Source of the DNA: Fonticula alba ATCC 38817
Taxonomy: Eukaryota; Protista; Nucleariida
NCBI GenBank assembly: GCA_000388065.2
Contig: KB932201.1
Direction: 5' to 3' (one strand)
DNA: 11,611 bases
The notes beneath the pieces are model-generated. The model was not told the DNA's origin. It saw only the letters and a list, made by a program, of their open reading frames with translations, and did not search any database. Within the stretch, counting starts at the first letter, position 1. Each line of letters begins with the position of its first letter. A program made the position numbers and the translations under genes. Positions 1-11,423 of this stretch are shown piece by piece.

Positions 1-402
1 GGGGGGGGGGGGGGGGCCGGCCAGCATCAGGCCCGTTTCGACAGCGACGCGGCCCGCCGGAGAACGCATCAGCACGCCCGCTCCCCGACATGCTCCGGCT
101 TTAGAAGGGGCCAGCCCGGCCCCCGCGCCCGGACGCGGGCCCGCGAGCGCGAGCACGGCGGGCGCTCGATCGGCACCAGAGCACCGCCCCCGGCGCCCCA
201 GGGGCGGCGGGGGACGCGTTTGGGTCCAAGGATCCCCGGATGGGCGCGCGAGCGCGCGCTCCGGGTGCACCCCAACCCTCGGGGTGCTCTGTCGGGCGAG
301 CCGCAGGGGGCGGCCCCCGCCGCAGGGCGCCGGATTTAACCGCCCTGGTCGGTCCCGGTAGCATGCGGTTCCGCCACCGCCGGGGGACCGGCCCCGGGGA
401 AC

Positions 403-415
403 GAGAGCGAGAAAG

Positions 416-458
<43 letters not shown>
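403..458. repeat. (GA)n microsatellite, perfect (GA)15 at 421-450
   Basis: Read directly from the sequence. Confidence 0.95.
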
Positions 459-460
<2 letters not shown>

Positions 461-755
461 ACCCCACCAAAAGTGGGGAACACAGGATGAGCCACAGCGA
501 GAGGGAGTGAGGGAGGAAGAACCGCGATTGACCCCCGGTCCCCCCGGGGGCGGGGGGGGGGGGGGGGGGGCCCGGGGGCGGCGGGACAACCGTGCGTTTT
601 CCAGGACCTCGCCCGGGGCCGGGAGAAATTCAGGGCTGTGGCCGTGGATCGCTGTTTACCTCTCTGCCCCTCCCCCCGCCCCTCCCCCCGACTAGGGATC
701 CCGGCGCCTCGCCCGCGGGCGGTCAGAAGCGATGGCACTCGGCCTCGGAGCCCCG

Positions 756-1119
<364 letters not shown>

Positions 1120-1354
1120 CCCCCCCCCCCCCCCCCCAAGGACGGAGACAAATGCCAGCCGCCCGTCGCGGGAGGCTTTCCCACGGCCGCGGCAGCGACC
1201 ACCCGCCTCCCCCCTCTGCCCGGCCCAGCCCTGCGCCCCTCCCTCAGCACGCACACACGCCCATCCACCGACCCGCCCATCCGCCCTTCCCTCGATATCC
1301 GCCCACCTCCCCAGTGGACCCTTCTTGCCGGCTCCCGGGATCTGCGCGGCGAAG

Positions 1355-3365
1355 ATGACCCCGTTCGAGGCCTTCTGCGCGATCAACCCGGCCGACACGG
1401 CCCAGGTGCGCCCCCTCCCGGGCTCGGCTCCCGCCCTTGCCTTTCTCGGACTCTCCCCCCTGCCCCTGCCGCGTGCCCCTGAAACTGGAACCTGACGCGG
1501 TCGCCCCCAATCAAGGTCGTGCAAGCTGGCCACAAACTGCTTCACCAGTCCGGACCTTCTCACGGCGAAGAGTGTGCGTCAGCAGTCAGCCTCCCGGTCT
1601 TTTGAGACCCTTTCCCTCCTTTTCTCCTCCTCCCCCCCCCCCTGGACACTGCTCCGCCGGTCCAAGCGTCATGCTGACTCGGCTGCATCGGGCCCCAGAC
1701 TGGTCCATCTGCGAACGCGTGCTCATCGCGGCTCTCGACCGCTTCGACCACTTCCGGCCGATTGCTGCGGTACGGTTTCTCGCGCGCGCGCGCGCGCGCG
1801 CGCGCGCACGTGCCCGCTGCCTCTGGCACGTCGCCTCCTCGTCAGTCCATTGACCGAGCCCGCTCGTATCGGCACCCGCACCCGCACCCGCACCTGCACA
1901 CATTCAGGACTGTCTCGGGCGGCTTGAGAAACAGTTTGGCTCACGCAGCCTGCGCATCATGCGCCTGGCCGGCATGTTCGAAGAGGCCAAGGGCGACTTC
2001 GAAGCTGCGGCCGTGGTGTACCACCAAATCCTTGAGCGCGATCCCTCGAACGCGGTGCGCACCCCCCCCCCCCCCGCCCCCCCCGCCGCTCCCCGGACTC
2101 GGGCCGTGGGTGTGCATGTCACGAAGAGCGACTGACTGTGTCCTTGCCACTCCGGCTGCCGGGGCCTCGGGCAATGAAACCACCACCCCCACCACCAGGG
2201 CGCCATGAAGCGCCTCATCGCGCTGGCCGGCCAGCTGGAGGATGCCTCGCGCATGGTCACCCTCCTGGTGGACTACCTGGAGATCTACATGAACGATGCC
2301 GAGGCATGGAAGCTGCTGGCGTCGCTCTACTGCCGGAGTAGCTGCTATGAGCAGGCGATCTTCTGCTACGAGCAACTGTTCGTCATCCAGGAGACCGCCT
2401 CCTGTCGGATTCTCTGCGCGGAAGTGCGTGCCCAGGAGGTGGGGGGGGGGGGCATTTTCTTTCCGCCTCCGGTCCCCAATGCTGGACCCTCCCATTGGCC
2501 TGCTCCTCCGCCTGCCCCCTCCCCGCGCTGACATTGCATCTCACTGGGGCCGGGCCACAATCGTGCCACAATCGGCCATTGGGGGGGCGGGACCCCTGCC
2601 CGCTGCCCACCGCAAGGCTCTCTACACCCGTGGGGACATTGAAAGCTTGGTCCTGGCCCGGAAGTACTACTGCCGGGCGTTGGAGCTGACCAGCTCCTCC
2701 TCCGGGACTTCGGTCCGGTCACCGACCTCCATCAGCAATGCTGTCACCTGTGGCGAGACGACGCGCGCCCTGCAGGGGATCTTCCTGGTGCGTTCGTGCC
2801 TCCCGTGGGATGCCCTGCTCGCTCTTTTGCCCGGTAGCCCGGGGATCGCCAGCCGCCCGTCCTGACCCTCCTCCCCCCCCCTCCTGTCCCCCTGGCACAT
2901 GAGCAGACCTCGCAGCGCTTGCTCCGGCTCCGGTCCCGCTCGCCGGCCGACCCGGCCATCGACCCGGAGCAGCATCACCGTGATCAGCTCATGGACGAGT
3001 CGATGCTCCGGCGCTCGGCCGAGAGCCTCCTCTCGGTGTTCGGGTCTGCCCGGGCGCCGTTCCCCGTTCGCCAGTCCTTCCATGCCCTGCTGCTGAGCTC
3101 CCTGGACCCGGACGCAGCCAGCCGCGCTGCCAATGCCGCTGCCACCCCGGTCGAGCCGGCTACCCCGCGCAAGTTGGCCCCGGTTGAGGCCTCCCCCTCG
3201 GTGCCGAGCTCGATCAGCTCCTCGGCGGCCTCCTCACCGGCCCTCGCCGATGAGGGTGACCCGCCGGTTGCCTCACCGGAGACCACCTCGGCCCCGGGTG
3301 ACGCCGGCTCCTCGCCATCGCCCTCCTCCGGCCCGCAGACGCCCGAGAGCTCTGGCCATGATTGA
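1355..3365 (+). CDS. EMC2: ER membrane protein complex subunit 2 (TPR protein), 7 exons, 393 aa
   Basis: Exons 1355-1405, 1516-1573, 1699-1769, 1908-2054, 2199-2423, 2617-2787, 2907-3365 (1182 nt, phases consistent, all GT-AG). Spliced protein MTPFEAFCAINPADTAQVVQAGHKLL...YWSICERVLIAALD...DCLGRLEKQFGSRSLRIMRLAGMFEEAKGDFEAAAVVYHQILERDPSNAGAMKRLIAL...YLEIYMNDAEAWKLLASLY...AIFCYEQL...ALYTRGDIESLVLARKYYCRALEL...RALQGIFL is collinear with human EMC2 as recalled (IWIIYEQVMIAALD, DAIQLYDRILQEDPTN, DQEAWHELAELY, LELSRKYFAQAL, RALFGL). The exact start codon is less certain. Confidence 0.9.
1781..1807. repeat. (CG)13.5 microsatellite in EMC2 intron 3
   Basis: Read directly; a second run of 17 nt lies at 3781-3797. 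Confidence 0.95.
1872..1899. repeat. (GCACCC)n short tandem repeat in EMC2 intron 3
   Basis: GCACCC x3 + GCACCT + GCAC. Confidence 0.85.
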
Positions 3366-3368
3366 CCG

Positions 3369-3374
3369 AATAAA
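3369..3374 (+). promoter_or_regulatory. Candidate polyadenylation signal AATAAA 3 nt after the EMC2 stop
   Basis: TGA-CCG-AATAAA-CAC; canonical hexamer in an otherwise AT-poor context. Two more AATAAA occur at 3637-3642 and 3649-3654. Confidence 0.4.
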
Positions 3375-3480
3375 CACCCACCTGCCTGCCTGCCTGGCAT
3401 TCGAGATCCTCCTCTGGCCTTGGCCTTCATGTTCCGGCACATCTGGCCACGGGCTGTCCGGCGTCGAATCCCCCGGCAGC

Positions 3481-3524
3481 CGGGCGGCCGGGCGGCCGGG
3501 CGGCCGGGCGGCCGGGCGGCCGGG
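3481..3524. repeat. (CGGGCGGC)5.5 tandem repeat
   Basis: Five perfect 8-mers plus CGGG. Confidence 0.95.
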
Positions 3525-3922
3525 ACACCGGGGGAATGCCACTGCCGAGCCGGGGCCTTCGGCCCGGATCGCGCGCGCGGCCGCCGTGTCCCCCCCCCCC
3601 CCCTCCGAAAGCCGGCATGTGGAGGCGGGGCGGGAAAATAAAGGGAAAAATAAAAACATGCCCATTTAAATGTCCCTCTTTTTGGGGGGACACCATCTTT
3701 GGCCCACGGTTGCCTTGAGACCGCCCGGCAGCCGGGGTCAGACTGACCCATTGCTCCGTTGGCAGACACCGCCAGCCGCACGCGCGCGCGCGCGCGCCCA
3801 TGCTTGCGCCCGGCCCCCGGGCCAGGCGGGCTCCTTTTTTTCGGGGCCTCTCCCCCGCGCGCTGGCAACCCGCCGGGATGGCCAGCGCAATCCACCCCTC
3901 CCCCACACGCATTGCTCCCCTT

Positions 3923-3923
<1 letters not shown>

Positions 3924-3959
<36 letters not shown>

Positions 3960-3973
3960 CCCCCCCCCCCCCC
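3924..3973. repeat. 50-bp poly-C tract (one T at 3957) ending 16 nt before the TRM82 ATG
   Basis: Read directly from the sequence. Confidence 0.95.
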
Positions 3974-3989
3974 TCGCCCCTTGCCCGCC

Positions 3990-4109
3990 ATGTCCGACAG
4001 CGCCTTCCGCCAGCCGTTCTCCTTCATCCTCGATGCCCGTGACAACATCGTCCTCATCTTCGGCAATGACTTCCAGATTGTGAACAAGGCGTGCGTTAGT
4101 CCCCCTCCG

Positions 4110-4140
<31 letters not shown>

Positions 4141-6303
4141 CTCGCGCGCTCTCTTTCTTCGTCTCTCGCGCTCTCTCTCCCCGTCTCGCTCTCTCTCTCC
4201 CTCTCTCTCCCTCTCTCTCTCTCTCTCTTGTCTTGAGCCTCCTTCTCTCGCCCCTCCCCACTGACCCACACTCCTGCCCTGCGGCCCTGCAGCTCCGCCA
4301 CCATCACCCACTCGACCCGCGCTGTGGAGGGCGCACACCACATCGAGGGCGGCCACACCACCCCCATCGTCGCGGCTGCCCTTTCGCCCGGCCAGGGGCA
4401 CTTTGTGACCAGCTCCAACGACCGCATTGTCACCATCTGGGACACTGCCACCTGGACGGTCAAGTCCTCGCGGTATGTCGACATCCCCCGGCCCCCTTGC
4501 CCTTCCTCCCTCGTGGCCACTGACCATTGCCCGCCCCACGCACGCCGGCACAGCCCGGTCAACAAGCGTATCACCTCCATCAAGTTCAACAAGGACGAGG
4601 ACACCTTCATCGTGGCCGACAAGTTCGGTGACCTCCTCTCGTGCGTCTCCGCCGCACATTTCCCGGGCCCCGCCCGGTCTCCCTCGCCCCCGGGCGTTTT
4701 CCTCGGACCCCTGTTCTTCCGCCCCACTCACCCCCTGGCTCCGGAACTGACCGCCCGCCCCGCCCCCCCCCCCCCGCCCCGCCCCGCCCCCCGGCCCCGC
4801 TACTCCAGCATCAACATCAACAACACCGAGACCCTTACCCCGCTGCTCAGCCACCTGACCATCGTCACGGACTTCGTGCGTTTCTCCCCCGACTCCTGGC
4901 GGGTGTGGCGGCCCTCCCTTCCGGATCTCCGCCGGTATCCCCTCTTCTCCCTCTCTTTCCACCTCCCTCTGACACATGTGTCCCCCTCGACCTCCGGCCT
5001 TCTGGGCGCCCTGCCCAGGCCTTCGCTCGTGATGGGTCGGAGATTGTCTCGGCCGACCGTGACGAGAAGATCCGCATTTCTCGCTTCCCCAAGTGCCATC
5101 TGATCGATGGGTTCTGCTTCGGCCATGACTCCTATGTCACCCGGCTGCAGATGATGGCCGGCGCCGGGCCCGACGCCTCGGACATCCTGCTCAGCGGCGG
5201 CGGTGATGGGCTTCTGATCGCCTGGAACCTCCTGACCGGCTCGCTGGTCCAGCGTGTGTCCATCACCGACATGATCGAGCAGCGCTTCGCCGCCGGCCAG
5301 GACGCCGAGAAGCAGGACGTACGCCGATGCCCATGCGGCGCTTTTCGTGGCCTTGCCTCCCCCCCGCCCCTGCCGCACCGACACGCACATACCCTGCGCC
5401 CCTCCCCCCCTTTTTTCTTTTGGCCCTCGCCCCTCTCCTCCTGCTTGACTGGCTCACTCCGTGCGTCTCTTGCTTTCCTTGATTCCTGCCACCATGCACA
5501 CCCCTCCCTCAGGTGGACATCATGGCCATCGTTGCCACCTCGGACCAGAAGCATGTCGCCGTTGCCGTCGAAGAGTACGCCCGCCGCTCCCTGCCTCTCT
5601 TTGCGCTTTCGCCGCCTCGTGTGGCTGACCGCCCTCTCCCTCCCCCAGCTACCCGGGCATTTTCGTCTTCAACTTCGATGCCTCCGCCGCCGAGCCTCTT
5701 TCTTTCTCGCAGACCCTCCGCGTGTCGGCCGACCATCGCCCCACTGCCCTGGCCATCGATGCCGAGGGTCGTCTCTTCGTTGGCTGGTCCAACGGCACCC
5801 AGCTCCTGTCGGCCTTTGACCTTGTCAACGGCAAGGTGCGCCTCGCATTTGCCAGCCGAGCGTTGTTCTCTCGCTCCCTCTCGCCCTCGCCCTCTCTTGC
5901 TTCCCTGCCCGTCATCGCCTCTTGCTCACCCGAAAATGCCGTTCCCACAGTTCGAGCAGTCTTCTGCGGACATCGTTACCACCATCAACAACAGCTCCTC
6001 AGTTCGTGGTACGGCTTTGTCCCTCGTCTGCCGAACAGCTGGGGTGCCCCTCCTCCCCCCCCCCCCTCTTGCCGAAGGGCCCTCGTCTCACCTGTCTCCC
6101 CTGTCTAACCCGCCTCCTTACCCCATCCGAATCCCCTTGCTTCCTCAGTTGTCACGGTCCCGAGCATGCTGCAATACCTGCAGCTCCGCTCCGGGGCGCA
6201 GAAGACTCGCGTCCTCGGTCGCGAGGCCGTCCGCGGCGACACCGACCTCATGGACGAGGATGCCGAGCAGCCAGATGCCAAGCGTGTCAAGACCGACGAG
6301 TAA
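3990..6303 (+). CDS. TRM82: tRNA (guanine-N7)-methyltransferase non-catalytic WD40 subunit (Trm82/WDR4), 9 exons, 398 aa
   Basis: Exons 3990-4090, 4293-4472, 4554-4640, 4809-4875, 5019-5318, 5513-5574, 5649-5835, 5951-6008, 6149-6303 (1197 nt, in frame, all GT-AG). Family motifs KRITSIKF...IVADKFGDL, LLSHLTIVTD, IVSADRDEKIRISRFP, FCFGHDSYV and LLSGGGDG match Trm82/WDR4 (ADKFGDV, TADRDEKIR, FCLGH). Codons are strongly C-ending. Confidence 0.92.
4111..4228. repeat. Imperfect (CT)n microsatellite in TRM82 intron 1
   Basis: (CT)13 at 4111-4136, then interrupted CT runs. Confidence 0.9.
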
Positions 6304-6630
6304 GGCGGTCGCTCTCCCCCCCCCCCCCCCCCGTGTCGGGAGCACTTGCTCTTCCCTTCCCCGGGCTCAGACATTCGCACTGCTCCTCTTGCCACCTGTT
6401 CTCTTCTCGCCCGCCGTTCCCTCCCCCCCTCCCCCCCTCCTGACGGACATGTGTGCAGACACACAAACACATACAAGCACGCATGTGCACGTCCCTCTCC
6501 CCACTCTTTCATGCCGAAAAAAAAATAGATCCCGTCCCTTCTGCAATGCCCCGGACCGTCGATGGCGATTTCCTCCGCTTCCCTCTGTTTGCCTGGAGCC
6601 CCTCGGCGACCGGCCCGCCGGGCCCCTCTT

Positions 6631-6653
6631 CCCCCCCCCCCCCCCCCCCCCCC

Positions 6654-6699
<46 letters not shown>
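6631..6699. repeat. 69-bp poly-C tract (GT at 6654-6655) between the convergent TRM82 and PA2G4-like 3' ends
   Basis: Read directly from the sequence. Confidence 0.95.
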
Positions 6700-6701
<2 letters not shown>

Positions 6702-6772
6702 CCCGACACACGAGAGTCCACCATGTGCAACCACCCCCGCGGCAAGTACGACGCCGGTGTTTGTGGGATATT

Positions 6773-8897
6773 TCATTGCCCCCCACCCGCCACGCCGAGC
6801 TCGTCGTCCTCGCTAGAGGAGGCCGAGTAGACGGCCTCAAGCTGTGCCCGGCGGCCAGCCGGTCCCCGTGACCCGAGTCCCATGGTGCGAAAGCGCCGAG
6901 TCAGGCGGTCGGGCAGGTCGACCTGCCCTTTGGTCGACAGGGCCGGCAGCCGGCGGGCCCCGGCGACCAGCGCCTCGAAGCAGGCCAGCTCCCGGAGTCC
7001 ATCCAGCGGCTGAGCGTGCCATGGTGTGTTAGTGTGCGGCCACAGGGCAGGGTCCATGGAGGGAGCGAGAGGGGAGATCAATGGACAGCAGGGGATGGGC
7101 GAATGGCCCGGCCCCGCCGCAAGCCGGTGTCGTGCCTGAATGAGGTGGGTTCGGTCGTCGACCGGGGCAAAGGCCACCGGCAGGGGGCCCTCGTGTGTCA
7201 GGAGCACCGTGAACTTGGCCATGGCCACGGTTTCAGTGGGTGCTTCGACAAAGGTCGGATAGGGGGTGACCATGTCCTTGCTGGCCAGGTCTGCAAGGCC
7301 AAGCCGGATCGCAGCCTCATCACCGAGAGATCTACCACCCGGCAGGGAGGGATGTCAGGGAGGAGGGGGGGGGGGAGAGACAGAGGGAGGGGCACAGACA
7401 TCAGCATGGAGAGGATACGGGTGGGAGGGGGGCGGAGGGCCTCCACAGCGGGGAGCAGGACAGCATGGCGCACCTCACCGAGAAGGGGAAGACACTGTGG
7501 TGCTCGGTGATCTGATTGAGAAGAGTACGTGAAGCACGCAGGCGAAGCTGGGTCGAGAAGCCCAACGGCTGGCGCGCGTAGATGTTCGGTCGTGAGAGGG
7601 CCGGATGCGCGGCTTGCGAGGCGAGACGACATGACCCGGTCCCGGTGGACAGTAAAATCGAAACGGCATACACCTCGCCCTCTTCGAAGGTAATCCCATC
7701 ACGCGGGTGTCGGCCATCCTTTGCTCCGAGGGAGAAGGACTTGTGTCCTTCAACAAGCTCCCGGTGCAGCGATGTAGATAAAATGCCTGGCATACAGGGG
7801 GGGGGAAGGGGGGAAGCAGGTGCGTTTAGCCGGCCGTGAGGCACGCCGAAAACAGGTGGGGGAGGAGAGAGAGGGAGAGAGAAAGAAGGGGGGGGGAGAA
7901 GAGAAAGGCAAGACCGAAATCAGGGAGACCGCGAGAGGAACGTGCGCACACATACCTGGGATAACATTGCAGCGGAAGTGTGCGGCCACTTGGCTGATGG
8001 CGGCCCGGAGGTCGGCGCATCGGTGCCCCGGCCGAAGAAGCTGCAACGCGGCCAGGCTGGCGTAGTGCGTGGCGCTCAGGAGGTCCGCCAGCCGGGGGAA
8101 ATCGGCGACCGGCGAGTCGGCCCCATCACCGGGCGGCACGTGCACCGTGGTACCAGCCATCACGGGGAAGGTGTTGAAATGGACACCAAGCTCACTGGTG
8201 CAGCAGAGGGCAGTCACAGGGGGTGGACCATGTAAGTGGCAAAGCCGTGCAGGGGCAGGCGCAAGGCGAGTAGGCGCGGGCAGACGCGGGGGAAGTACAT
8301 TTTGACAATGTCCCCGGGGTTGATGAACATCGGCGGATCGGTTTTCAGCGGACAGCAGTTGCCGATGATATTGTTGACGGCCACCGAGGTGGGAAAGGCC
8401 ACGCCATGGCGAAACTGCCGGTAGTGCCGAGGGATGGTGCCCTGCGATTCCAGGATGTGCCGGTCACCGAGGATGCAGAGGTCCAACACCGAGGCACCCG
8501 GCTGACAGGCATCAACCACAGCAGCAAGGGCACCTACGGGAAAGGGGGCCACAGGGGACGAGGTGAGTGCACGCCAGCGAAGAGGGCCCCGGCGGAGCCC
8601 CATGGCGGAAGGGATGGCGCAAGGGGGGGGGGGGGAGGGGGGAAGAACACGGACCGTTGGCGATCGAAGCGGCAATCTGGTAAAAATTCCGCACATCCGG
8701 GTTGACAATGGTGTCTTCTATGTCTTCAAAGCACTCGGACTGCCGGGGAGGGGATGGGGAGGGGAGGGGGGAGGGGAGGGGGGGACATCGAAGGAGGCCA
8801 GAGTCAGCAAGCGAGCGCTCGAGGCCGGCTGGCAGGTCCGGGACAAAGGGCGGCGCACCTGGAACTCGCGCTCCAGCTGGCGGCGGCCGCGGCTCAT
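6773..8897 (-). CDS. PA2G4: Divergent PA2G4/Ebp1-like protein (peptidase M24 'pita-bread' fold, catalytically dead), 7 exons, 447 aa (489 aa if the last intron is retained)
   Basis: Exons in transcript order: 8897-8859, 8739-8655, 8533-8299, 8194-7956, 7786-7474, 7331-7136, 7009-6773 (1344 nt). Motifs DTIVNPDVRNFYQIAASIAN, SVLDLCILGD, GVAFPTSVAVNN, GDIVKIELGVH, FEEGEVYAVSILLSTGTG, LRLRASR, FPFSVR and KFTVLL parallel Ebp1 (TIAEDLVVTKYKMGGDIAN, GIAFPTSISVNN, GDLVKIDLGVH, EVYAVDVLVSSGEG, MPFTLR, KFTVLL). Family membership is secure; orthology versus paralogy is not. Confidence 0.85.
7010..7135 (-). other. Putative GC-AG spliceosomal intron (intron 6 of the PA2G4-like gene)
   Basis: CAG|GCACGA donor, which fits the local GYRCG consensus; CACTAAC branch site at 7034-7028; pyrimidine-rich body; CAG acceptor at 7012-7010; 126 nt, phase 0. 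Confidence 0.7.
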
Positions 8898-9016
8898 GGT
8901 CGCGTGCCTCAGGATGCAAGGGCCGCGGGAGGAGAAAAAAGCCCGAAAAGCAGAAGGAGAGGGGCCCCAAGGTGGGCAGAGTGAGGGTGTGCGTGTGTCT
9001 GAATGCGAGGGGCGAA

Positions 9017-9051
9017 GGAGGAGGAGGAGGAGGAGAAGGAGGAGAAGGAGT
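9017..9051. repeat. (GGA)n/(TCC)n trinucleotide tract upstream of the PA2G4-like gene
   Basis: AGGAGGAGGAGGAGGAGGAGAAGGAGGAGAAGGAG. Confidence 0.85.
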
Positions 9052-10016
9052 CTCATGAGGCTCCATCTCCCGGGGGAGGGCCGGCCCCGGTGTCCAGGCA
9101 GTTGAATGGCGCCGATCGCGGAGCGCAGGGGCGCCGGGAGGGGAAAAAAACATCGGCCTGGGCGCCTCGATGCGGGGTGCCAGGCACGCTGGAGGGGGGG
9201 GGGGGCAAGCGCGCCAAGCGCTTCGGCGTCCTGACGCAAGGCCGAGCCGATCGGGCGGGTGGCGGCCCGGGGGGCGTGGGTGGGGGGGGGAGGGAGCGGG
9301 GCACAGCTGCCGACGGATCGTGAGCGCTCGACGTGATCTCAAGTCCGTGGGCGCGTATTGTCCGCGGCCCTTGCGGGTACCGGGGGGGACTTTTGGTGCC
9401 GGCGCCGGTGGCCGGCAGCGGGGGCCCCCCCGGTGCGGCTCTACGTGCAGCTTTAGAGTCTTTTCATCGTGCCCACACCCACCAGGGCCCGGTGAGCCGC
9501 GCAGCACGTAGACCGACCGCTCAGGGGCCCTCTCCGGGTCCCTGCGCATGCGCCTGGCCCAGCCGCGCGCCTCCGGTGCCCCGTCCGGGTGCTCGCACGC
9601 AAGTGCGGGCCCCGGGCCCGATCGGCACGCTCCTCCTGGGGCGCGTCGGTCGGCGCGTGGGCCCGGGGCGCTGGGCAAGGTGTACAAACACACCCCGCCA
9701 TCTTCCTTCTCTTGCCTCTCTCCCCCCCCTCCCGGCTTTTGACACATGCCCCTTTCAAATAATCGAATCCCTCTCGCGGGGCCGGCCACCGGCACGGTGC
9801 GCTTCCCCGCCGCTCGTCCTCTCGTTCTCCCCCGGGCCGGGCCTGGCCGAAGGCGCCCACCTCCATGTTGAGGGGATGGTGTTTTGGCCAGAGAAAGAGA
9901 GAGGGGGGGGGTAGTATGTTTTGTGTGGTGTATTTCCCATCGGCCGGCGGATGCCGATGGACAGGGGGGAGGGGGGCAGGGCAGGCCGGCCCAGAGACAC
10001 GGAAAAACACCGTGTG

Positions 10017-10836
10017 TCACTGTAGATCGCGCGCCAGGCTGAGGCCGCCGCCGCCGCCGGATTTTCCCTTCTTCTCGTAGAAAAGATCCATGCGTGCGGT
10101 GCCGACATTGACGATCTTCGGGCATCCGTCGCGCTAGATTCGGTGGGTGAGTGAGTCGGATTTGCCAGGGCACAGTGCGTTAGAGAGGCCAGAAGAGGGG
10201 GAAGCCCGGGCATTTGGACGGACGCAGGTGCGGGCAGTGTCGCAGCACAACGTACATCCTTCTCGAGGATGGTGCACTCCTTGCAGTAGTACGCGTCAGA
10301 CACACCGACATTGCCGCAAATGACACAGCGGCCCTGGGGAGAGCAGCGCATGAGGGAAAAGGGGGCATGGGGGAAAAGAGTGCATGGGAGAAAAGGGTGC
10401 ATGGGAGAAAAGGGTGCATGGGAGAAAAGGGTATCTGGGTAAGTACATGGAAGAGGGCAGGGCGAGAGAGAGAGAGAGAGAGAGAGGAAGAGAAACAGAG
10501 AGGCAGGCAAACAGAGGGGGGGGAAAAGTGGCGAGTCACATCCAAAAAGAGGTCGCACTTGGAGGGAGCCAAAGTTGCAGTCATCGCAAATGCGAACCAG
10601 CGTGGCCGGGTGCACGAGCGAGTCACAGACAACGCACTTGCCGTCGCCTGGCAGAGACAATGACGGGAGGCCGAAAAAATGAGCAGGTAAGTAGGCGCTC
10701 CCGCAAAGAACATTGGAAGGAATGGTGGCAGACAGGCAGGCACAAGGGATGCCGACGCACACTTGTCGCAAAGGCGGCCAATCGCGACGCCAGGCTGCTT
10801 CTGGCACATAATCAAATCCGAGTGATGGCGAGCCAT
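10017..10836 (-). CDS. PHF5A: PHD-finger-like SF3b splicing factor PHF5A/Rds3, 4 exons, 119 aa
   Basis: Exons 10836-10761, 10647-10559, 10333-10256, 10133-10017 (360 nt). Protein [119 protein letters not shown]. All 12 Zn-ligand Cys are at the human positions (11, 23, 26, 30, 33, 46, 49, 58, 61, 72, 75, 85). Confidence 0.97.
10347..10431. repeat. 17-bp minisatellite, 5 copies, in PHF5A intron 2
   Basis: TGCATGGGAGAAAAGGG x3 perfect (10381-10431) plus degenerate copies at 10364-10380 and 10347-10363. Confidence 0.92.
10464..10485. repeat. (GA)11 microsatellite in PHF5A intron 2
   Basis: Read directly from the sequence. Confidence 0.9.
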
Positions 10837-11423
10837 GGTGGGCGGGGGAGGGGGAGGGGGAAAGGAGGAAGGGAGGAAAAAGAAGGGAGATGGGGTCCTG
10901 GCTGCCGGACACCCCCGGGGGCGGATGATGCGCAGCCAGCGCGCGCCCTTTTCTGCCCGGCGACGGTGGGAAGCGTGTATCATGGGGAGACTCTATCATG
11001 TGACCCCGCCACATGCATCGTTGTGGGCTAGTTCGATGGCTCGGCGTCGGCGGGCGAGGATTGCCCACCACCCGGGGAGCCCCCTTGGGTGTGGCGGGGG
11101 CCGCTTTCATCGGGTGGGAATTAAATCCCTTCCCCGGCGGCCACTGGCGGCCTCCTGCCCCCGCCATTGGGGCGATGTCTCCCACGACCCCCTCCGGCCG
11201 ATCGAGCATCGAGTCTCCCGCCTGCCAAACGACCCGGCCACGCTTTGCCCCTCGGGGGGTGGGCCCTCGCCCCCCCCCCCCCCCCCCCCTTGTCATGGTC
11301 TGCTCGTGGGGCCACACCGACGAAGCGGCGAAGGGGCTGCCTCGACGGCCAGATCGCGCCGGCCCGGGGACCGCCACCGGCGCATTTGGTTAGCTCAACA
11401 CACCTTGACCGAGGCTCGCCGCC

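Follow-up and report, generated by a model that had tools for sequence, protein, structure and literature searches.

Within SF3b, the zinc-knot subunit PHF5A and HEAT repeats 15 to 17 of SF3B1 together make the pocket for the bulged branch-point adenosine. In human and yeast, the tail of PHF5A touches nucleotides of the intron on the 3' side of the branch point. Human PHF5A has five CXXC motifs and two single cysteines, which provide 12 ligands for three zinc ions, and C40 is not a ligand (Teng 2017, PMC5458519). Its helix-loop-helix from N50 to R57 touches intron RNA; it includes residues 51 and 54, and residue 48 directly precedes it (Teng 2017, PMC5458519). PHF5A contributes Tyr36 to the branch-adenosine pocket; the hydroxyl of this residue bonds to K1071 of SF3B1, and the aromatic ring packs against R1075 (Teng 2017, PMC5458519). 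The diene tail common to the pladienolides, herboxidiene, and the spliceostatins contacts Y36 (Finci 2018, PMC5859971).

Previous mutagenesis demonstrated that Y36C, Y36S, Y36A, Y36E, and Y36R raise resistance to E7107 by 100- to 5000-fold and that Y36F and Y36W do so by only 5- to 10-fold; by this measure, pladienolide-class binding requires an aromatic residue at position 36 (Teng 2017, PMC5458519; Finci 2018, PMC5859971). Protection by Y36A extends to spliceostatin A (Cretu 2021, PMC8302644). Two further residues of this face are known from drug work. R38 neighbors the C7 substituent of E7107, and cells with R38C are more sensitive to some analogues (Finci 2018, PMC5859971). Cys26 is the covalent target of spliceostatin A and sudemycin D6, and human cells with an engineered C26H are insensitive to the former (Cretu 2021, PMC8302644). 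As to basal splicing, Y36C is nearly silent in human cells (Teng 2017, PMC5458519); in the literature on residue 36, overexpression in rice altered more events.

We analyzed an 11,611-nucleotide stretch of the Fonticula alba contig KB932201.1 (GCA_000388065.2), which we call the window. We found a four-exon PHF5A/Rds3 gene on the minus strand, from 10836 to 10017, with a spliced product of 119 amino acids (Table 1). The annotation of KB932201.1 has a 119-amino-acid PF03660 gene with the same span. The window DNA over this span is identical to that of KB932201.1; the two are the same sequence, so the identity is no independent support. In a profile search, all four exon pieces matched PF03660 (PHF5) at colinear profile positions, with scores of 64.7 bits for exons 2 and 3 together, 34.4 for exon 1, and 26.9 for exon 4 (curated cutoff, 26.7 bits). 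Intron 1 splits codon 26, which encodes Cys. The spliced protein has cysteines at positions 11, 23, 26, 30, 33, 46, 49, 58, 61, 72, 75, and 85 and thus keeps all 12 zinc-binding cysteines as five CXXC motifs and two single cysteines. The sole Cys replaced is the nonligand C40, which is Ala in Fonticula. Where the basic YGFKKR end is usual, the C-terminal tail has a run of five Gly and a further 11 residues, and the Gly run is encoded by a GGC triplet repeat. An Rfam search of window positions 1 to 10840 gave no match.

Table 1. Features of the window and of the eudicot loci and Leu36 lineages compared with it. Coordinates without a locus handle are window positions.
Feature	Position	Strand	Description
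EMC2-like TPR protein gene	1355-3365	+	Annotated neighbor of PHF5A
Trm82/WDR4 gene (WD40)	3990-6303	+	One exon 100% identical to H696_00813 of Fonticula alba
M24 peptidase gene	6773-8897	-	Annotated neighbor of PHF5A
PHF5A exon 1	10761-10836	-	ATG at 10836-10834; residues 1-25 and first base of codon 26; PF03660 positions 1-25
PHF5A intron 1	10648-10760	-	113 nt; GTGCGT...CAG; +4C donor; ACTTAC 40 nt from acceptor
PHF5A exon 2	10559-10647	-	Residues 26-55, pocket-facing; ungapped to human PHF5A 27-55; PF03660 positions 27-58
PHF5A codon 36	10616-10618	-	CTC, Leu; usually Tyr
PHF5A codon 38	10610-10612	-	CAC, His; usually Arg; His in 7/107 sampled cores
PHF5A codons 48, 51, 54	10562-10582	-	Asp, Phe, Leu; 0/107, 3/107, 2/107 in the sample
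PHF5A intron 2	10334-10558	-	225 nt; GTGCGA...CAG; fivefold 17-nt tandem repeat and (GA)n run
Intron 2, 17-nt unit x5	10348-10432
Intron 2, (GA)n run	10464-10516		
PHF5A exon 3	10256-10333	-	Residues 56-81; a further PF03660 segment
PHF5A intron 3	10134-10255	-	122 nt; GTACGT...TAG; CTCTAAC 46 nt from acceptor
PHF5A exon 4	10017-10133	-	Residues 82-119 and TGA stop at 10019-10017; PF03660 positions 82-103
PHF5A C-terminal tail	10020-10075	-	Gly-rich
GGC triplet repeat in tail	10044-10059	-	Encodes the Gly run
C-rich stretch	10848-10886		Upstream of the PHF5A start codon
Eudicot variant loci	L090:8191-8664, 10257-10601
	L091:5977-6330, 9539-9883
	L092:7983-13200
	L093:7995-8330
Leu36 lineage			Eudicot paralogue group
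Leu36 lineage	P0019		GC-rich contig; adjoins a folate-synthesis (HPPK/pterin-binding) gene pair
Leu36 lineage	P0121		Marine metagenome type
Leu36 lineage	P0122		Marine metagenome type; TARA samples
Leu36 lineage	L011		Animal-like copy without introns

The plus strand reads GAG at codon 36, which gives CTC (Leu) on the minus strand, within the peptide CDSLVHP. The translated exon 2 piece (10645 to 10559, minus strand; 29 amino acids) aligned without gaps to residues 27 to 55 of human PHF5A (chain 5o9z_y; E, ~1e-11), and exon 2 also aligned to residues 27 to 53 of yeast Rds3. Because the alignment to the full-length human chain is gapless, the numbering is fixed as Leu36, His38, Ala40, Phe51, and Leu54. 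The substitutions that stand alongside Y36L are R38H, C40A, E48D, Y51F, and Y54L, and the cysteines around Leu36 (C30, C33, C46, and C49) are present. The original prediction was thus right about the coordinates, the codon, the register, the conserved flanking cysteines, and the companion changes R38H and Y54L. It had also argued that Tyr to Leu takes at least two nucleotide changes; TAY to CTC takes two, so a single base error is unlikely.

A sequence or assembly artefact at codon 36 could still produce this codon, and the window and the public assembly, as one and the same sequence, do not check each other. Besides the two base changes required, the frame, the splice sites, and all zinc-binding cysteines are intact, and the rare substitutions nearby point to real divergence rather than to local error. 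We regard an artefact as extremely unlikely. Judged by its sequence, Fonticula PHF5A is an intact, bona fide gene with Leu at residue 36.

We then surveyed residue 36 in two samples. The first was a word search with exons 2 and 3, biased to sequences that share words with Fonticula; its best 120 proteins had Tyr in 104, Leu in 9, Phe in 5, and Met in 2. The second was a metagenome scan with peptide patterns that flank residue 36 on both sides and are blind to residue 36 itself. The 80 loci nearest a canonical PHF5A query were kept, and they had Tyr in 71, Phe in 6, Leu in 2, and His in 1. Pooled, the samples contain 107 distinct 55-residue cores (Tyr, 82; Leu, 11; Phe, 9; Met, 4; His, 1), and the share of Tyr36 is 77 to 89% of sampled sequences. 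The claim that Y36 is conserved from yeast to human is overstated: Tyr is found in human, in yeast, and in 82 of the 107 cores, but Leu, Phe, Met, and His are natural states too. Tyr36 is a strong majority state and is neither invariant nor family-defining.

Leu36 is a minority state (11 of 107 cores) and was seen in Fonticula and at least five further lineages. All Leu36 codons that we observed are CTN. TAY can be turned into such a codon in two steps, by way of TTY (Phe) or CAY (His), and Phe36 and His36 both occur naturally; Leu36 may have been reached through either state. Phe36 is resident in several marine or environmental eukaryote lineages (the P0058/P0133 cluster and L045, L073, L077, L079, L081, and L085), and the P0058/P0133 cluster has 59 members, including MMETSP transcripts. 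Met36 was seen in P0040 and P0072 and His36 in L015. Other states of Fonticula are rarer than Leu36: besides His38, Asp48, Phe51, and Leu54 (Table 1), Asn63 was found in 5 of 107 cores. The Fonticula core has the consensus residue at 45 of 55 positions, which places it at about the 5th percentile among the 107 cores. A search restricted to exon 2 gave four candidates and no close relative of Fonticula PHF5A, and a degenerate DNA pattern for the CDS... peptide around residue 36 had no match in metagenome contigs. Read from these alignments, Fonticula Leu36 is one instance of rare but recurrent natural variation at residue 36.

Several named Leu36 matches are eudicot PHF5A paralogues. Salix brachista and Dovyalis caffra each have an intronless 110-amino-acid variant copy with C26D and Y36L (and R38H in Salix), located 1.6 to 3.2 kb upstream of canonical PHF5A. 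We found that dN/dS between the Salix and Dovyalis variant copies is 0.066 at a dS of 0.38, which places the variant under purifying selection. In Gossypium barbadense, at least three intact copies that carry C26H, Y36L, and R38H form an array, and Salvia splendens has C26D alone. Because the few defining changes of the plant copies include the two best-known resistance sites, an inhibitor-driven origin of Leu36 becomes more credible in general. The joint occurrence of Leu36 and loss of C26 in plants suggests that selection by inhibitors is able to act on this face of PHF5A. We consider the eudicot copies with C26D or C26H and Y36L a candidate natural toxin-insensitive SF3b isoform.

The tandem arrangement of variant and canonical PHF5A in the Salicaceae raises the question of whether the Fonticula gene is likewise a specialized second copy, a variant isoform in a genome that also has a canonical Tyr36 PHF5A at another place. 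We looked for a second PF03660 gene in the annotation of the 22 kb around PHF5A and found none. The Fonticula gene, unlike the plant variants, keeps C26 and all zinc ligands, and PHF5A has no other apparent cellular counterpart (Teng 2017, PMC5458519). We therefore think that a second copy is an improbable explanation.

Fonticula PHF5A is altered at two inhibitor-contact residues of the pocket, Y36L and R38H (contact roles from Finci 2018, PMC5859971). Our preferred reading, which we hold to be probably correct, is that this PHF5A is functional and that its rare, recurrent Leu36 weakens binding of the inhibitor tail while adenosine docking is kept, with no tie to +4C donors. According to this model, Leu36 and His38 would leave the pocket wall bulky and hydrophobic but without an aromatic ring or a hydroxyl to bond K1071. 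Docking of the branch adenosine should still work, because basal splicing in human cells is hardly affected by Y36C, Y36A, and Y36S. The chief consequence would be a weaker hold on the diene tail of pladienolides, herboxidiene, and spliceostatins. This could confer partial to strong natural tolerance, possibly useful to a bacteria-eating soil amoeba. Since nonaromatic substitutions at position 36 give strong resistance, it is reasonable to infer reduced inhibitor binding in Fonticula, and natural tolerance is plausible. Fonticula keeps C26, so covalent spliceostatins would retain their anchor.

The sole figure for Y36L itself comes from docking of spliceostatin C to an Arabidopsis model with crude MM-GBSA scoring, which gave -60.1 kcal/mol compared with -63.1 kcal/mol for the wild type (PMC9878571 supplement). 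In the same series, Y36A gave -53.0 and Y36R -59.2 kcal/mol; the loss relative to the wild type is about 3 kcal/mol for Y36L versus 8 to 10 kcal/mol for Y36A and Y36C (PMC9878571 supplement). The modeled value suggests a modest effect. Inhibitor sensitivity is set by the SF3B1 side as well as by PHF5A. Yeast has Tyr36 and yet is fully resistant to pladienolide B, due to Hsh155 pocket residues (Hunter 2024; Carrocci 2018), and the PHF5A/Rds3 face is stated to have no differences between yeast and human (Hunter 2024). We found no paper on Fonticula with pladienolide, herboxidiene, or spliceostatin, on natural PHF5A pocket variants, or on the eudicot PHF5A variant paralogues.

Because the Fonticula core is generally divergent, drift is a live alternative: Leu36, His38, and the other odd residues may simply be tolerated in a fast-evolving lineage, as neutral or near-neutral changes with no link to inhibitors and little effect on drugs or splicing. 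Position 36 is more variable in nature than reputed (Tyr, Leu, Phe, Met, or His), Y36C is almost silent for basal splicing (Teng 2017, PMC5458519), and the docking loss for Y36L is small (PMC9878571 supplement). The Fonticula core is also among the most divergent sampled and carries other rare changes, such as E48D and G63N. Against drift, the prevalence of Tyr among the sampled sequences means that the site is constrained, and all tested nonaromatic substitutions at position 36 gave at least 100-fold resistance (Finci 2018, PMC5859971). Moreover, Leu36 in plants accompanies loss of the inhibitor contact C26 in genes under purifying selection. We consider drift possible but rather unlikely, and reduced inhibitor binding by a functional PHF5A remains our preferred reading.

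The original prediction went further and proposed that Leu36 may alter branch-point selectivity and, together with the +4C donors, hints at a remodeled yet intron-rich spliceosome. The three PHF5A donors (GTGCGT, GTGCGA, and GTACGT) all have +4C, the acceptors are CAG, CAG, and TAG, and one exon of the neighboring Trm82 gene ends with a GTACGC donor. Branch-like motifs are found in all three introns, ACTTAC in introns 1 and 2 and CTCTAAC in intron 3. The first AG past the motif serves as the acceptor in introns 1 and 3, at a distance of 40 and 46 nt, respectively. The ACTTAC of intron 2 lies 106 nt from the acceptor, with one AG 5 nt past the motif and no other before the acceptor. We found no sign of changed branch choice in these introns, and the claim of altered selectivity is unsupported. 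The proposed tie to +4C donors was also unsupported, and we ruled it out with a PHF5A gene on an unrelated contig from a GC-rich eukaryote (L003:834-1336; Logan ERR10900032). This gene has GTACGG, GTACGG, and GTGCGT donors, yet it has Tyr36, along with His38 and Ala40; thus, Leu36 and +4C donors are not coupled. As in Fonticula, an intron of this gene falls within codon 26, and in the same phase. Its source may be a relative of Fonticula or a separate +4C lineage.

What is new here is a natural variant inside a well-known family. The drug literature treats PHF5A Tyr36 as invariant, and for years no other PHF5A resistance site was known. Should Leu36, with His38, reduce the affinity for inhibitors and leave splicing unharmed, then the PHF5A side of the pocket evolves in nature too. 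Fonticula would then supply mechanistic studies with a viable resistance allele that already exists and would provide a concrete test of the idea that inhibitors shape microbial spliceosomes (Hunter 2024). Burkholderia rinojensis makes spliceostatin C, a phytotoxin (PMC9878571), and one proposal has it that the spliceosomes of microbial eukaryotes are shaped by splicing inhibitors from bacteria (Hunter 2024). We tentatively raise the possibility, which we think doubtful at present, that bacterial SF3b inhibitors select in the wild on the PHF5A side of the pocket and that Fonticula and the eudicot paralogues converged on an inhibitor-insensitive PHF5A. If true, natural resistance on the PHF5A side would be seen here for the first time, beside that known on the SF3B1 side in yeast and worms. 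The Fonticula case by itself amounts to a modest observation on sequence, and the plant paralogues are the stronger lead.

Human PHF5A (SF3b14b; PDB 5SYB, 6EN4, and 5O9Z) and yeast Rds3 belong to the same Pfam family as the Fonticula gene, and exon 2 aligns to them without gaps. Canonical PHF5A and the Fonticula protein have about 73 to 77% identity, no indel through residue 103, and the same five CXXC motifs and two single cysteines. In contrast to human PHF5A and Rds3, Fonticula has Leu36, His38, Asp48, Phe51, and Leu54 on the side that faces the pocket and the RNA, and its tail is Gly-rich, less basic, and nine residues longer. The human resistance alleles Y36C, Y36A, and Y36S (Teng 2017, PMC5458519; Finci 2018, PMC5859971) share with Fonticula the loss of the aromatic side chain at position 36. 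Unlike the engineered residues, the Leu of Fonticula is bulky and hydrophobic rather than small or charged, and it is a natural, apparently resident allele.

The natural resistance of Saccharomyces cerevisiae and Caenorhabditis elegans (Carrocci 2018; Hunter 2024) likewise involves a natural change in the branch-adenosine/inhibitor pocket. The differences in those organisms are on the SF3B1/Hsh155 side, whereas the Fonticula change is on the PHF5A side, where resistance is inferred. The eudicot variants of Salix, Dovyalis, and Gossypium share Leu36 with Fonticula, and those of Salix and Gossypium share His38 as well. These variants are intact 110-amino-acid frames under purifying selection in which Cys26 is replaced by Asp or His, whereas Fonticula keeps Cys26. 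The Salix and Dovyalis variants adjoin a canonical copy, and Fonticula PHF5A stands as the single copy within its 22 kb.
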